In this document: piece after piece, positions 14,895-50,712 of the stretch | How the letters are laid out: each line of letters opens with the position of its first letter | Position numbering within the stretch: the first letter of the stretch is position 1 | DNA from: Azolla caroliniana | Taxonomy: Eukaryota > Plantae > Polypodiophyta | Length of the DNA: 64,000 bases | Assembly (NCBI GenBank): GCA_043228905.1 | Contig: JBHGNT010000002.1 | Span: 27,218,001 to 27,282,000, forward strand | Direction: 5' to 3' | The notes under the pieces: generated by a model | Seen by the model: the letters and a program-made list of their open reading frames with translations, nothing else | Databases searched by the model: none | What the model was told of the DNA's origin: nothing | Position numbers and translations under genes: made by a program

Positions 14895-14987
14895 GGTCTT
14901 GTGACCGTACTCCCCAGGCGGAGTGTTTAACGCGTTAGCTGGGCCCCTGATCCGAAGACCAAGGACGAACACTCATCGTTTACGGCA

Positions 14988-15023
<36 letters not shown>

Positions 15024-15183
15024 AGCTTTTGCACCTCAGCGTCAGTAAGACCCAGAAAGTTGCCTTCACTCCTTCGACGTTCCTTTGTATATCTCCGTAT
15101 TTTATCCCTACACACGAAATTCCACTCCCCTCTGTCCCACTCGAGTAAATTGGTTTTCAAAGCATTCTGCCAGTTGAGCTGGG
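14895..15183 (-). pseudogene. rrn18: Nuclear insertion of a plant mitochondrial SSU rRNA (rrn18) fragment (NUMT), V4-V5 region
   Basis: Contains the universal SSU motifs CCGTACTCCCCAGGCGG and GGACTACCAGGGTATCTAATCC (806R site, 14989-15010). The segments GGGCCCCTGATCCG..GACCAAGG.CGAACACTCATCGTTTACGGCATGG and CCCTACACACGAAATTCCAC look plant-mitochondrial to me. Truncated at both ends, with AT-rich nuclear flanks. Confidence 0.88.
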
Positions 15184-15923
15184 TATAGAAGCTCGTGTAA
15201 AAAGTAAGAGAGAGGGGAGATAAAAAGTAGATGGGAGACAGGTTATGAATTTGTAGATATAAAATTATATATTATATAAGAGAGAGTTAATGGGCTAGTA
15301 GATAGTCACATTGACTTCTAACTATAGGTGCTCTGTTCAAATCTGGTCTTACAATGCACTGTGATTTAAGGAATTTTATTCTTTTTTCATTGAAGACAAA
15401 ATTGGCGACCCCTCTTCTTTTTTTCCTATTAAAAGGAGGTAAAGGGGGGCTCATTTGGAAGGATATTTTTGGGAGGAGGAGACTATTGCCATTTTTCCTT
15501 CGGAGCTCTTCATCTTCTTCTTCACCACTTCCCTTCATCTCGTACCCCTTCATCCCCTCATCGCCACATGCTCGTCTTCTTCGTGTTGGCACTCGAAGTG
15601 CTCATGAGCTCGAGCTTCGTTGGTTCGACTTTGCGAGTCCCGTTTGTCGTTGCGAGCCCGTGTGCTCGCCGTTCGGGTGGTCGTGGTTTGTTGGGGTCAA
15701 CATTTTTGTGGTGCTCGTGTGTTCGTCTTCGTCATGTTCGGATTTGCTCTTTGTCTCTAAGGGTATTTAGTGTTTATGTTTTGTTGAGCTTGTGGTTAAC
15801 TAGAAGTTGTCACATTGTAATCAAACCTTTTTTATAAAGGGTCCTCTTGTGTTGGAATCGAACACGTATTTATTCTTTAGCCAATATCATTCGTGTTTTT
15901 CTTTCTTTCTTTGTTCTCGTCCA

Positions 15924-16866
15924 CTTGCACGTTTGGCCGCCTTGTGACGAGGGAGCGTTTTGGGCGTGCCCATGCACCTCTCCTCCTCATAAAGGCGTAC
16001 GAGCATTTGTGTGTGTGCTTGTGTCTTCCTTGTACGTTTGGTCGTCTTGTGACGAGGGAGTGTTTCGGGCATGCCCATGCACCTCTCCTCCTCATAAAGG
16101 CGTACAAGCATTTTGTGCGTGTGTTTGTGTCTTCCTTGTACGTTCAATTGTCTTGTGACAAGGGAGCGTTTCGGGCATGCCCATGCACCTCTCCTCCTCG
16201 TTAAGGCGTATGAGCATTTGTGCGTGTGTTTGTGTCTTCCTTGTACGTTCGGCCGTCTTGTGACGAGGGAGCGTTCGGGCTTGCCCATGCACCTCTCCTC
16301 CTCATAAAGGCGTACGAGCATTTTGTGCGTGTGTTTGTGTCTTCCTTGTACGTTCGGTCGTCTTGTGACGAGAGAGCGTTTCGAGCGTGCCCATGCACCT
16401 CTCCTCCTCATAAAGACGTACGAGCATTTGTGCGTGTGTTTGTGTCTTCTTTGTACGTTCGGCCGTCTTGTGACGAGGGAGCATTTCGAGCGTGCCCATG
16501 CACCTCTCCTCCTCATAAAGGCGTATGAGCATTTGTGCATTTGTGCATTTGTTTGTGTCGCCCTTGTACGTTCGGCCGTCTTGTGACGAGGGAGCGTTCG
16601 GGCGTGCCCATGCACCTCTCCTCCTCATAAAGACGTATGAGCATTTGTGTGTGTGTTTTGTGTCTTCCTTGTATGTTCGGTCGTCTTGTGACGAGGGAGC
16701 GTTCGGGCTTGCCCATGCACCTCTCCTCCTCATAAAGGCGTACGAGCATTTGTGTGTGTGTTTGTGTCTTCCTTGTACGTTTGACGTCTTGTGACAAGGG
16801 AGCGTTCGGGCATGCCCATGCACCTCTCCTCCTCATAAAGACGTACGAGCATTCGTGTTTGTGTTA
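15924..16866. repeat. GC-rich tandem array, 9 x ~105 bp
   Basis: The CTTGTGAC(G/A)AG anchor occurs at 15941, 16046, 16152, 16257, 16362, 16467, 16580, 16685 and 16788 (periods 103-113 bp). Confidence 0.97.
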
Positions 16867-44353: not shown

Positions 44354-44533
44354 ATGTTTCAATATTCTTGTATGGATGTAGGTACTCCTGAGTGAATAAT
44401 GTTTCTATATTCTTGTATGGATGTAGGTACTCATGAGTGAATAATGTTTCTATATTCTTGTATGGATGTAGGTACTCATGAGTGAATAATGTTTCTATAT
44501 TCTTGTATGGATGTAGGAACTCATGAGTGAATA
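44354..44533. repeat. Minisatellite, 4 x 45 bp
   Basis: ATGTTTCTATATTCTTGTATGGATGTAGGTACTCATGAGTGAATA at 44354, 44399, 44444 and 44489. Confidence 0.95.
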
Positions 44534-46447
44534 GGGTGCATTATACACTTACAGATAAATATATGTCAGCTCTAGTTGGAGTTAACATGTGCTAGAAAAA
44601 TTCGAAACTCACAACTTTATTTGAGGTTTCGCCATGTTTTTTTCTTTTGGGTGATCCTTAATTTTTTGTGGGGGTGCTAGTGCCAACTAGGGTAAGCATA
44701 AGCCCATACACAAACACATTGTACATATATAACAAAATAGAATAACTGGTTTTAGACGAAGTCTCACTTGGAAATTGGCACTTAAATTTTAATAGTTGGG
44801 AGAATACAAATTTTTTAGACGTTATGGTCTTTTGGACAAATCGAAGAAGTGGGGTATGTGGTCTATGCATGTGCATGTATATTCATTCACGTCACGTATC
44901 CATACGAGATGGGGCACCATTGTATCTTTAAGGGACAAGCAAACTTCAACAAGTACATGAGGGAGCTCTATAAAAGGAGGTAGACTTTCGGTGTCTTTGG
45001 ATTATATTGAAATACTTAGGATTCTCTCGAATCTTCTTTAACAAATGTTCTCAAAACCTTACCCCACGACATTTTAATACATTTATGTTAAAACTTTAAA
45101 ATCTGCTAATACATCCCCTCTCACATGGTTTCATGTTTTAATAGAAAGCTTATTCTCTTGAAAGCTACCAAAATTCTAAAAACACCGGATTGAACTTACA
45201 ATCAAAACCAATCATCTCATGTTTTATCTGCAAGGTGAACCTACTTCTTAAATCAGTCCATTTCTCTTCTTCCTATCCTAAAGTTATTGTACAGTGTTAG
45301 GTTAGAATAGTTATTATTAATTTTCTTTCATATTCAACTCCCCATCTAGCTTTGGTGCATTCCATGTATTGGGAGAAAAAATTAGAAATCCTAGCATCAT
45401 GATGATGATTGGGGCCTCTTTTTACTCCCCAAATCTAGAGATTCCATGAATGTTTCCTAACAATTAGCTTGCTCATGGCTTCCATGTATGCCATGCCATG
45501 ATGAGGATGGTGGTGCATCATCATCATCACTATAGACATGTCTCATTCTAATGACCTTTACCATCATCATAATTCAGCATTCAGCATTCAGCATTCACCA
45601 TTCACCATTCATCATCACCATCACCATCACCATCTACATTTATGGTCCTTGAACCCCATGGGTGACACATCGACAAGGGCTTGAGGGTTCACATGATTGA
45701 TAATCATCATATTTATCATGTTCATTTTCATTGCATTTGAAGCAAGCCATGAACAAATCGAAGTCTGTGGCACCTATAATGGGTTTGTGTTAGTGGTCAT
45801 TCTCATGCCCATAGTATAGTCCATGATCATATGCTAATATAGCATATGACACACACCAACAAAACACTTCACAACACATAAAATCCATTTTTTAGTTAAA
45901 AAGACTAAATACTAAATAAATAAATAAGTAAAAAAGTAATAAAAAGGTAAATAAAATAAATTCTCCTTCTTGGATCTCTCAATCCACACCGAGGAAAAAA
46001 ACAGAAAGAGAAACAGAGTCTCCCCTGTTTCTCTACTTATTTAATCTGTGTATTGTACACACACATATAAACAACTCAGTTGCCATAGATTCTTTTCTGT
46101 TCGATGATATAGCACTCAATTTGGCTTCCCTTTCAAAGAGCATTCATTGAGATCTCATCATCTGCCTTTTCATTTTCTTCTAGTTCTGTTTCTGAGCTAT
46201 GGAAGAATTCCTTCCTTCTTTCATTATCCTTCTAAATTAGTTGAAGAAAAAGATTAAAATGAGCTTCTTCCTTTTAGAGTGCTCCTCTTATAGAAGCTTC
46301 TAATTCCTCTCTGTAAATAAGCTGTCTCGCAGTCCCTTTAGTTTTCTTTCTCTCTGTGTTTCTCTGTATTTCTTTCCTTTAGAGAGTATCAATCTGGCCA
46401 TCAGATCTGCTCTGCCTTAATCCTACTTTAATAAAAACTTACCAATC

Positions 46448-46453
46448 ATGTAA
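46448..46453 (+). promoter_or_regulatory. AUG-stop minimal uORF (ATGTAA) in the putative NIP 5'UTR; candidate boron-responsive element
   Basis: CAATCATGTAAAG lies 316 nt upstream of the NIP ATG; a second ATGTAG is at 46543-46548. The same element type controls AtNIP5;1. Confidence 0.6.
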
Positions 46454-46763
46454 AGCACTCAATCCTTAAACTTTAGATTTAACCCTCTTGTAGGGAACCT
46501 CAAAAAAAAAAAAAAAAAGATTTCATATGCAATAGCGTTAGAATGTAGTGAGGCAAATCAAAAGGTAAAATATCTCTAATTCAAGCCTAGAAAGCTTTTT
46601 AAAAAAAACCCTAAAACAAAAAAACCAAATTTCAAGTAATTAGTGATTTTTTGTTTGCATTTCATATTGTTATTTAGTATTTACATTGATGGTGGTTAGA
46701 TAAAACAAAAACAAGTGTGAAAATTTGTTAAGTGCTTTCATCACAAGAAAGAAACAGAAGAAA

Positions 46764-49700
46764 ATGGGATCAGAAGATGGATATAATAATAATGCAGGGT
46801 CCACAACACCAGTATCTACTCCCCAGACACCATTTACTCCTCTTCCTCTGCTGAACACTTCAAGGAATGCCAATTCATCATCAGTAGGAAGAGAGGTTGT
46901 GGTTGTGGATGGTGATGGTGATGGTAATGGTGGTGCTAGGAAGGTGTCTATAATACTAGGGCAATGCTTCGCCATTGACACGAATGGCCGGCATGGCGAC
47001 GAAGATCCTGAGAACATCACCTTCTCCCGCGCTTGCGTCCACCCTCCGGTCCCTTCAGTCTCTCTCACAAGGAAGGTTAGAATAGAAATTAGGGTTTCTT
47101 CCCTTCCCTTCACTTATTTCTCTCCATTCAAGCTCAACACCATGATCATGATATACCCCTCACTCATTCATGATTCTATTACTATATCATGAATGAATGA
47201 AGATGGTGCTTGCAAAACACTTTTGTTATGTACTTGCTAAGCTATTGATTCAGAAGATGTGTACCATGTGGTGTTGTTGTTTAAACTTTAAAATGCTATG
47301 ATCATTGATGCCTTTTGTTCATTTGTTTGTATTTGTAAAATGCTATTAAATGTCGTGTGCTCATTTTGTTTTTTGTGTTTGTAATGGGGTATCATTAGAT
47401 TGGTGCTGAATTTGTGGGGACATTCATCTTGATATTTGTGGCGACGGCCGCGGTGATCGTGGATGAGAAGACGGGCGGTTCGCTCACGATAATCGGGAAT
47501 GCCGCGGCCGCAGGCCTTGCCGTGATGGCCGTCATCCTCTCCGTTGGCCATATCTCGGGCGCCCACCTCAATCCGTGCCTCACCCTTTCCTTCGCCGCCC
47601 TCCGCAAATTCCCTTGGGTCCAGGCATGTACATACATATATATAACCTCTCATCTTTAGTAGTCACTAACAATCTCAACCATTGCATTACAATCAATGCA
47701 TGTCATTAAGCATATACCCTATCCATTATGGCATCTCATGAATTATCATCCATCATGTCATATCTAGAAAAACACAAAATTTGGGGGCATTAGCTCGTAT
47801 CATATCTAGATAGTCACGGAATTCTAATCCATCATGTCTACTCATGTCAACCATATTATGTGCTTGTTCGTCGCATGTCCAGCTCATAGTGTCTCATTGC
47901 TTCCTTTGTTTTGTGAGATAACTCATTGTCAATATCTGGGGGATCTCTTGTAATTATGTAAGCAACTGACCGCGAGGTACCACTTGAGGAATTCGATCGG
48001 AAGGGATTTCTTATGGGCCGAGTATGTTTGCACATATGCATAAAGAGTATCCTTGAGATTGGGGTACAAGCACATCCTCTAGGAAAAGGGGTACATTTTG
48101 ATTTTCTTATAATACCATGTCTGCTAGGTAACTCAAATCTTTGGCATTCATTTTGTTTTCAAATATGTTGGGTGGCATTTTATCCATTGTTCTTATCTTG
48201 TCTTCTTTTGTTCCATCTAGGTTCCCGCATATCTTGCGGCACAGATTGTTGGATCGATATGTGCATCTTTTGCTCTCAAAGGCATTTTCAACCCTGATCT
48301 CCATGGAGGTGTTACCGTTCCATCTGGCACTGACCTACAATCTTTTCTTCTTGAACTTGTCATCAGCTTCAACCTCATGTTCGTCGTCACTGCGGTCGCA
48401 ACGGACACTAGAGCCGTAAAAAAAACTCTCACATCCGGTTTTTTGCTTTTTGTAGTCAATTTGTTTTCATCAAAATGCATGAATCATAACACCATTATCG
48501 TCTTTGGCTTTTTAAATTTTGGTTTCATCCATCTACTACTCTTATGCTGGTATTTATATAATCTAAATTTCACCGACCCTTTTTCTCGATTCCATGTTGC
48601 TGGTACTCCCTAACGTTGGAAAAGAACTTTGTGCCATTTGGATTTGGATGCATTCATGTATATCTTATGTATCTATAACTAGTCTTGTTTATGCCAATTG
48701 CACACACTTTTAGGTGTTTGTAATGGACTCACCACATTATATAACATGTGTGTTTCTTTGATATATAGTCTAGAAGGTTCTCTCACCAATGCATTGGATC
48801 TCATCCACTTGGTGTTTAATTTGCAATTGAAGTGTGTGTTACTCTTTGTGTGCATATTATAATACTTTGTTGAAAGCTATACAAGTATAGACTACTCATT
48901 GCACTCATTCTAAAGCATTTTGACATGTCAACATGCTTGAATTTCCAATAATTGTTTTGGCATTATGGCATCATTGATCAATGCATCTAAATTTCTAGCC
49001 TTTCCAAGTATCAACCCATTGGCATTCCTAATTGACTTCTAGTATTAGCACATTCAAATTTCCCAATTCTTTACTAGATGTTTTAGTGTCAATCTGGTCT
49101 ATTGCTCATGATTCTAACGTCTCATCTTTTCGATTGCATTAGATAGTGTCTCCTCATCCAAAATTCCAACCATGCATTACATCAACCTTTTCTTAGATGT
49201 ATCATGCAATCAAGTTATAAAAGTTTGTTTCTCATATTACACTAGCAGTTGCGGTGTCAAAACTCATCCAAAATTGTAAAATATATTACCAACAATTGAT
49301 TTAATATTTTTGGAATGTCCTAGGTTGGTGAATTGGCTGCAATAGCTGTTGGAGCCACGGTCATGATGAACATACTTATATCGGGGTAAAGATTCTCTTT
49401 GCATTCGTTGAACAACCCATGTTTTGTTGCATTGGATTCATAACCAACAATACGTGCATGAAAGCACGTGTTACTACTTTTTAGCTCACTACTTAAATTA
49501 GGAGATGATACTCGTCAAAACCCGAGACATTGACAACTTGTTGAGAGCCTTGTCCCACTAAGATCTATATAAACAAATACTACGAGTATTTCAAAATCCA
49601 GTCTCCTCCATATAATCGACTGGGGATTTGAAAGCAAAAATGGATTATAAATAGGAAATTTGACATTTTACCTAACAAGAGGGAGAATTTCTCAATTAAA

Positions 49701-50712
49701 AATTGAGAGAAACTCGTAGGTTGTAAATTTCACACATAGCTAATAGCTATTGAAAAATGTGGGTGTCACACCATGTGGTTAGGTTGGGAAAACCACATAA
49801 GAAATATTGAAATTGTGTAGTTGGGGAATGGTTACTACAAGAGAGGTTAATTATAGTGATAAAAAGCAATAACACAAAGCCCATCAAAACCCGAGTGGCC
49901 AATATAGATGTCATGCTAGTGCTCACAAAGGATCTATAATCATCTTCTCTTCACAATGGAATCTTTGGGACATCGTGTGGAAAAATTGTGTAAATGGATG
50001 CCTTGATCCATAGCCATAAAATGTTAACTCTGACCAATATGGAGAAGAAACGTCTCTTTTTTGGCAAAACTTGTTTGCATCGTTGTTTTCCCCCCCTTAG
50101 TGCATCCTCATTCTAGTAGGAAACAATCTACTACAATCGAGAGGAAATTTCTTGAAAAGAAATCATATATTTATACTCACAATGAACTTCCTTTCTTGAA
50201 AAGAAGTCATATATTTATACTCACAATGAACAAACAGTTCTAGCCTTTTTTCCGCCTAATATAGAAATGTCATTGGCGAGCCAATGGCTTCAACCAAAAC
50301 CTAGGGATGTATGACTGCTTTTTTGCCTTGGGAATCATGGTATGAATTGGTAATCAATACCCATGACATGAATCATCTTTTGAAACTGAATTGCTAAATC
50401 ATGACATGAATTAGGGTTGTTTGGTGTCTAGGATTGAATGCCATATCCATCCCCAATACGGATTCTTTTGACACTTCTATGAAATAACTATGCAGTGCGA
50501 CGTCGGGGGGTTCAATGAATCCAGTGAGGACATTGGGGCCAGCCATAGCCGCGAACAATTACAAGGGGCTATGGCTCTACATGATCGGGCCACCGCTTGG
50601 TGCATTGGGGGGTGCTACCGCATATGCTCTCATCCGCCTTAGTGACGACGATCCAGGACCCTCGCGCTCCGTCCGGAGCTTCCGACGCTCTGCCACCACC
50701 ACCCCACGCTAA
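46764..50712 (+). CDS. NIP: NOD26-like intrinsic protein, NIP II subgroup (NIP5;1/NIP6;1-like boric acid channel)
   Basis: Exons 46764-47075, 47399-47623 (225 nt, GC donor), 48221-48415 (195 nt), 49324-49385 (62 nt), 50496-50712. Motifs: AEFVGTFILIF, GNAAAAGLAVM, HISGAHLNPC, FVVTAVATDTRAVGELA, GATVMMNILISG and SGGSMNPVRTLGPA; C-terminal RSFRR. ar/R filter A/I/G/R. Confidence 0.96.
50149..50231. repeat. Tandem duplication, 2 x ~39 bp, in NIP intron 4
   Basis: TTCTTGAAAAGAA.TCATATATTTATACTCACAATGAAC occurs twice. Confidence 0.9.

Follow-up and report, generated by a model that had tools for sequence, protein, structure and literature searches.

Two AUG-stop elements in the leader of a boric-acid-type NIP gene of Azolla caroliniana: a probable NIP5;1-type boron switch outside the NIP5 group

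We analysed a stretch of 64,000 nucleotides (nt) from Azolla caroliniana (contig JBHGNT010000002.1, positions 27,218,001 to 27,282,000; hereafter the window), which on its forward strand carries a gene of the NIP channel family preceded, in the leader, by two minimal upstream open reading frames (uORFs), each made up of a start codon with a stop codon right after it (AUG-stops). All coordinates are those of the window, and features lie on the + strand unless marked otherwise. AUG-stop 1 is an AUGUAA at 46448..46453 in the context ...TTTAATAAAAACTTACCAATCATGTAAAGC, and AUG-stop 2 is an AUGUAG followed by UG at 46543..46548, with TGA at 46549-46551 directly after the ATGTAG. Both have an A at -3, and their distances to the main ATG, which is at 46764, are 316 and 221 nt; a run of 17 adenines (A17, 46502..46518) is situated between them. 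Further upstream, TATAAA at 46066..46071 is the likely TATA box of the gene. These positions agree with the first-pass annotation of the window, which had placed the TATAAA near 46066 and had proposed that the leader contains a conserved boron-sensing translational switch.

The RNA evidence consists of contigs from four runs (X1-X4), and coverage is given among the contigs listed. Their depth in the introns is zero, so they represent RNA, and they are spliced at every intron of the NIP coding sequence. Exon 1 (46764..47075), with a lineage-specific N-terminus ending in VSLTRK, is followed by a GT..AG intron of 323 nt (47076-47398), as seen in spliced contigs of X1-X4. Exon 2 (47399..47623), recognised by the Pfam MIP domain and by alignment to OsLsi1, encodes helix 2 with the filter Ala and the first NPA box, which here is NPC (47574-47582). 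It is separated from exon 3 (48221..48415) by a GC..AG intron (47624-48220), the joint of which is present in all four runs. Exon 4 (49324..49385, 62 nt), placed by RNA contigs and by its ungapped register, carries the filter Ile of helix 5, and exon 5 (50496..50712), with the motif GGSMNPVR, contributes the filter Gly and Arg and the second box, NPV, and ends with the stop codon TAA at 50710-50712. The exon lengths add up to a product of 336 residues, with the MIP domain found by Pfam in exons 2, 3 and 5. Almost all of the exon differences listed between the window gene and RNA contigs of related species (22/24) fall in third codon positions; thus, the gene is under purifying selection.

The filter positions in OsLsi1, the rice channel used for comparison, we take to be Gly88 (helix 2), Ser207 (helix 5), and Gly216 and Arg222 (loop E). 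In the alignment with OsLsi1 (7cjs, 7nl4) the first, third and fourth of these correspond to Ala, Gly and Arg in the window gene, and at the place of Ser207, by ungapped register, exon 4 has Ile. Together they give the aromatic/arginine (ar/R) filter Ala-Ile-Gly-Arg (A/I/G/R), as claimed earlier for this gene. The gene has the filter of the NIP-II type (Ala / Ile or Val / Gly / Arg), and its product is accordingly predicted to be a boric-acid-type channel.

Colinear RNA contigs point to an unspliced 5' leader of ~670 nt (46092..46763). The most upstream contig, from X2, is colinear with 46092-46404 and begins 26 nt past the TATAAA; an X3 contig is colinear with 46139-46404, an X1 contig with 46529-46687, contigs from both X2 and X3 span 46643-46812, and the main spliced X1 contig begins at 46690. 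A splice joint in the leader was sought in the RNA contigs of X1-X3, and none was found. A 5'-untranslated-region (5'-UTR) intron suspected at 46565..46678 was ruled out by the colinear X1 contig at 46529-46687. The expectation that both AUG-stops would be exonic and unspliced is borne out directly for AUG-stop 2, which is inside this X1 contig; AUG-stop 1 is flanked by transcribed contigs that show no joint, and RNA over it we infer from bin depth and from these flanking contigs.

There are seven upstream ATGs in the leader: the two AUG-stops, two two-codon uORFs, one four-codon uORF and two uORFs of 13-14 codons. A two-codon uORF, AUG CAA UAG (46527..46535), has no counterpart in the legume leaders compared; the four-codon uORF (46689..46703) retains its AUG in related contigs, while its peptide is not kept. 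The leader also contains a telo-box, AAACCCTAA, at 46606-46614, located 3' of both AUG-stops and kept in the related contigs L001, L005 and L006, which might mark a second start region. Some 1.6 kilobases (kb) upstream of the NIP start site, a 45-nt tandem repeat (44354-44533) comprises four copies, 97% alike, with an ATGTAG in each.

The surroundings of the AUG-stops resemble those in the leaders of NIP5;1 genes. The NIP5;1 genes of Brassica napus, sequences chosen independently of the window and compared with it by eye, contain two modules in which TTTATAAAAA(A)C is followed, after 6-9 nt, by ATGTAAAT (leaders in PMC6852077 Fig. S2). The proximal module reads ...CAAATCATGTAAAT, or at length ...CTTCAAATCATGTAAAT, and is followed by an A-run; the window has CCAATCATGTAAAG. 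The same proximal module confirms the NIP5;1 context AAUCAUGUAA, which the first-pass annotation had given. The counterpart of TTTATAAAAA(A)C, a box shared by the Brassica napus and legume NIP5;1 leaders, is in the window the A/U-rich box TTTAATAAAAAC (46427..46438): at 12-19 nt upstream of AUG-stop 1 (46429-46436) the window has TAATAAAA, and legumes and Brassica have TATAAAAA in the same register within 1 nt, so that with its one extra A the window box is a near match, not an identity. The A17 run likewise has an A-rich counterpart at the same place in legume and Brassica NIP5;1 leaders. In Medicago, the NIP5;1 leader reads TTTATAAAAACCATCCAATTATGTAA, followed by an A-rich stretch (MtNIP5;1, PMC7724820 suppl. 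6); the machine-read text of this leader is without the ATGTAG that is present in the near-identical contigs L029, L030 and L038. The leader given in the same supplement as that of Arabidopsis NIP5;1 was set aside: it is labelled AT2G47160, whereas other papers give AT4G10380 (PMC9831718, PMC10896292), hence it is the leader of another gene.

A 23-nt pattern common to the window and Medicago was used to scan JGI metagenome contigs and yielded 32 loci (L008-L039). About 20 of these belong to a single family, of which there are 8 distinct versions, and the others look like chance matches. The leaders of this legume family precede NIP5;1-type N-termini (MPESE..TPGGPLF..RVDSL), and downstream NIP exons were found in three of the loci (L022, L030, L038). 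Both AUG-stops of the window align with the AUGUAA and AUGUAG of the family, and the elements follow in the same order: CCTTA, the box, CCAAT-N-ATGTAA, an A-run, ATGTAGTG and the main ATG. The second AUG-stop, ATGTAGTG, is invariant in all 8 leader versions. AUGUAA and AUGUAG are 95 nt apart in the window, compared with 81-89 nt in the family, and the main ATG follows the AUGUAG at 77-108 nt in legumes and at 221 nt in the window. Synteny was sought between the window and the legume loci, and nothing is shared beyond the NIP exons. In two loci (L019:311-497 and L023:44-229) the box-plus-AUGUAA module is tandemly duplicated 163 nt apart, which together with the AUGUAG makes three AUG-stops.

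Judged from its sequence by the published hallmarks, the window gene is outside the flowering-plant NIP5 group. Among NIP groups, three introns are unique to NIP5, and the NIP5 boxes are NPS/NPV (PMC10674200, PMC4814485); the window gene has four introns, and its first box is NPC, as in the relative P0009, whereas the angiosperm NIP5;1 exons L022, L030 and P0010 have NPS. A survey of aquaporins assigns the NPC variant to SIPs, not to NIP-II channels (PMC10674200). The legume NIP5;1 loci L022, L030 and L038 differ from the window gene also in having exons 2 and 3 fused, with no intron between them, and N-termini of their own type. The NIP5-type N-terminus (TPGGPL..RVDS..CKC..CFTDF) is absent from the window gene, the N-terminus of which is unrelated apart from ...VSLTRK; exon 1 matches only two metagenome protein clusters, P0001 and P0002, among 1.84 billion representatives. 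Identity to the legume NIP5;1 exons is 61-68% (exon 2, 68%; exon 3, 62-66%; exon 5, 65%), and exon 2 is 75% identical to the angiosperm NIP5;1 exon P0010. The 62-nt exon 4 has the same length as an exon of Selaginella SmNIP7;1 (PMC3355642). The four introns of the window gene are the ancestral state, which has been kept. The protein mixes states that we take to be NIP5-typical with others that we take to be NIP6-typical. The gene is either NIP6-like or a NIP-II gene from a lineage that split off before NIP5 and NIP6 parted.

Two further loci showed unusual arrangements of NIP exons. In the related contig L006, a WD40-like open reading frame (ORF) occupies positions 701-1084 on the opposite strand, immediately behind NIP exon 1, in place of the intron and exon 2 of the window; the copy may have been rearranged, or it may be a paralogue. 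The other is a lone NIP5;1-type exon-2 fragment (L040:10001-10270), unaccompanied by any other NIP exon, between P450 and CC-NLR genes of a plant contig from a JGI metagenome; it looks like a gene fragment or pseudogene.

Conservation of the module in the NIP5;1 genes of angiosperms has been described before (PMC9208793, PMC9831718, PMC6852077): the AUGUAA is conserved between species together with the sequence around it (PMC9208793), and the NIP5 mini-uORF with its flanks is highly conserved and is translated in seven angiosperms (PMC9831718). Studies of the mechanism report that stalling at the AUG-stop reduces re-initiation and brings about a cut 13-14 nt upstream (PMC12666852, PMC11915504, PMC5698777), and that in Arabidopsis mRNA decay is enhanced by conserved sequence lying 12-19 nt upstream (-139 UAUA; PMC12666852, PMC11915504). 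As cited in PMC13338717, boric acid has a stabilising effect on the eRF1 of 80S ribosomes at the AUG-stop (Tanaka 2024), and boric-acid stalling at an AUG-stop is a property of the ribosome that operates in yeast as well (Tsednee 2020). The boron AUG-stop genes reported for Arabidopsis are NIP5;1, SKU5, BOR2 and ABS2, and NIP6;1 is not among them (PMC10896292). Our literature search turned up no paper that connects NIP6;1, or any non-flowering plant, with an AUG-stop, which is absence of evidence only.

Among the closest known systems is Arabidopsis thaliana NIP5;1 (AT4G10380), where two AUG-plus-stop minimal uORFs likewise stand ahead of an A/I/G/R boric-acid channel, with an A/U-rich box 12-19 nt upstream, an A at -3 and an A-rich stretch after the element. 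The window differs from it in that the second copy is AUGUAG and not AUGUAA, the leader is ~670 nt long compared with 312 nt, the AUG-stops lie at -316 and -221 compared with about -122, the box is UAAUAAAA, and the gene that carries the leader does not belong to the NIP5 group. Leader AUG-stops are also reported to be boron-responsive or translated in Arabidopsis BOR2, SKU5 and ABS2/NGAL1, but these genes are unrelated and the likeness is one of mechanism only. In human start-stop elements (PMC13338717), too, ribosomes are held at a uORF that involves no elongation, and the main frame is repressed; no metabolite dependence is described for them, however, and their flanks are not conserved with the plant module.

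We consider it probable that the AUG-stops of the window are the known switch, in which boric acid acts through eRF1 to stall ribosomes, here ahead of a NIP-II gene that is no NIP5-group member. Ribosomes scanning the leader would start at the AUGUAA (and the AUGUAG), which have a good context with an A at -3, and would terminate at once. At high cytosolic boric acid, eRF1 would be stabilised on 80S ribosomes standing at the AUG-stop, and these would stay in place, so that fewer ribosomes would re-initiate at the main AUG, and the mRNA would be cut ~13-14 nt upstream of the AUGUAA, here at ~46434-46435, aided by the A/U-rich box. Plentiful boron would thereby lead to less channel synthesis. 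Of the claim with which the first-pass annotation began, a conserved NIP5;1-type boron-switch module, the structural part stands, with the homology of the box, the -3 A, the A-run and the second AUG-stop, the A/I/G/R filter and the unspliced leader; stalling, boron dependence and cleavage in this leader are expected by analogy with the Arabidopsis work.

Several observations weigh against the boron switch, and they are considered here with the explanations that they would fit. If the matter were one of chance, the AUG-stops of an AT-rich 670-nt leader would be functionless, and the likeness of the flanks would be coincidence or low complexity. The bare hexamers are indeed at or below the expected frequency, as had been cautioned for ATGTAA: the window has 58 copies of ATGTAA on both strands compared with 71 expected from shuffles, and 218 of ATGTRR compared with 215 expected, while its + strand has 93 AUG-stops, or 1.45 per kb, with ~1 expected by chance in the leader and 2 seen. 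No enrichment of the AUG-stop hexamers was found in the 64-kb window, and the case rests on context and conservation. Here the window box has UAAUAAAA instead of UAUAAAAA. An nhmmer profile of the 8 legume leaders has one match in the window, at 46410-46554, but there is some circularity in its E-value of 6.4e-5, as the pattern that retrieved the family is one which the window matches by construction. An upstream-only profile of the legume leaders gives no match at the site of AUG-stop 1 in the window, and for a downstream profile from which the searched pattern had been removed the single best match is at 46498-46554, with a weak E-value of 0.27, although this match falls at the one expected place. 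The window's own relatives do not extend the comparison: the ENA contigs L001-L007 (clusters P0001 and P0002) all end in the A-rich run, and none of them reaches the AUG-stops, and the contigs L041-L049, found in an exon-2 search, are all without a leader. The Brassica comparison and the second AUG-stop are free of the circularity, and both argue against coincidence, as the Brassica leaders share the box, the spacing and the -3 A, while the second AUG-stop is homologous in its distance, and the + strand of the 64-kb window contains just two copies of ATGTAGTG. In addition, the 17 nt before the ATGTAA agree with the Medicago-type module at 13 positions (binomial P ~6e-5), the ATG at 46448 ranks first among the 3470 ATGs of the window in the ungapped match to the legume upstream 25-mer, by a narrow margin (16/25, with five others at 15), and the site precedes the one gene class known to use the AUG-stop element. 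We regard coincidence as quite improbable.

The transcript data bear on another explanation, by which the AUG-stops are constitutive dampers or are mostly bypassed: together with the five other uORFs they would lower translation of the long-leader isoform, the main mRNA would start near 46690, and control by boron would be weak or tissue-specific. In X1 the depth is 3.6 at 46529-46687 and 14.1 from 46690, and no X1 contig lies upstream of 46529; this step and the empty upstream part suggest that many X1 transcripts may start 3' of both AUG-stops. Such a start site has been reported for Arabidopsis ABS2 in some conditions (PMC10896292), and start-stops are known to repress without a metabolite in Arabidopsis and human cells (PMC10896292, PMC13338717); a leader with seven upstream ATGs would fit a damper, too. 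The segment 46405-46528, with AUG-stop 1 in it, is uncovered among the RNA contigs listed; the short-read contigs break because of the A17 run. In X3, by contrast, depth is the same in the upstream leader contig (14) and in the contig that spans the start codon (14.4); the flanks shared with NIP5;1 leaders of proven boron dependence are more than a generic damper needs, and stalling by boric acid at an AUG-stop is, by the yeast work cited above, a property of the ribosome. Damping or bypass is unlikely in our view. It is also conceivable that the conserved block acts as DNA, as a CCAAT/TATA-like promoter or an intragenic enhancer, with the ATGTAA being incidental. CCAAT does directly precede the ATGTAA in the window and legumes, and STOP1 sites and Pol II pausing at the ATGTAA have been reported for the leader DNA of Arabidopsis NIP5;1 (PMC11915504). 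Brassica, however, has CAAATC or ACAAGC in place of CCAAT and yet keeps the ATGTAA and the box, the AUG-stop region is transcribed, and in the Arabidopsis work the transcriptional effect, too, is tied to the stalling of ribosomes and to decay of the mRNA (PMC11915504); a role as DNA only we hold to be very improbable.

Two other features of the window lie away from the NIP gene. A 290-nt fragment on the - strand (14921-15211) matches positions 567-869 of the bacterial-type small-subunit rRNA (Rfam RF00177, 151.7 bits) and is probably a piece of organelle rRNA inserted in nuclear DNA. Also on the - strand, at 15887-16823, long overlapping ORFs are built from a repeated peptide unit (…HKHTHKCSYAFMRRRGAWA…), and probably represent a tandem DNA repeat, not a gene.

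The direct action of a small molecule on a terminating ribosome is best understood for boric acid at the NIP5;1 AUG-stop, the published conservation of which is limited to flowering-plant NIP5;1 orthologues. What is new here is the same module, with its flanks, on a NIP-II gene that lacks both NIP5 hallmarks (three introns and NPS/NPV) and comes from a poorly sampled lineage. As the window gene is outside the flowering-plant NIP5 group, the module is probably ancestral to the NIP-II genes. The stronger proposition, that the boron switch itself is ancestral to NIP-II and not an invention of the NIP5 group, and has been kept with its box, spacing and second AUG-stop in a non-flowering plant, perhaps a fern, seems to us evenly balanced. 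A non-angiosperm host of the module, which would push the mechanism deeper in plant evolution as the first-pass annotation suggested, is plausible, with indirect support from the exon-level searches, each of which found just two clusters, and from the mixture of NIP5-typical and NIP6-typical states in the protein; were the plant a flowering plant, the gene would be an ordinary extra example. If the lineage is that of a fern, the switch would be older than the split between NIP5 and NIP6, and its diverged variants (the UAG stop, the shifted box, the long leader) would help to separate the flank features needed for stalling from those for mRNA cleavage. If an ancestral switch is true, NIP6-type genes would have lost it, and the NIP leader would be among the oldest conserved metabolite-sensing mRNA leaders of land plants, several hundred million years old.

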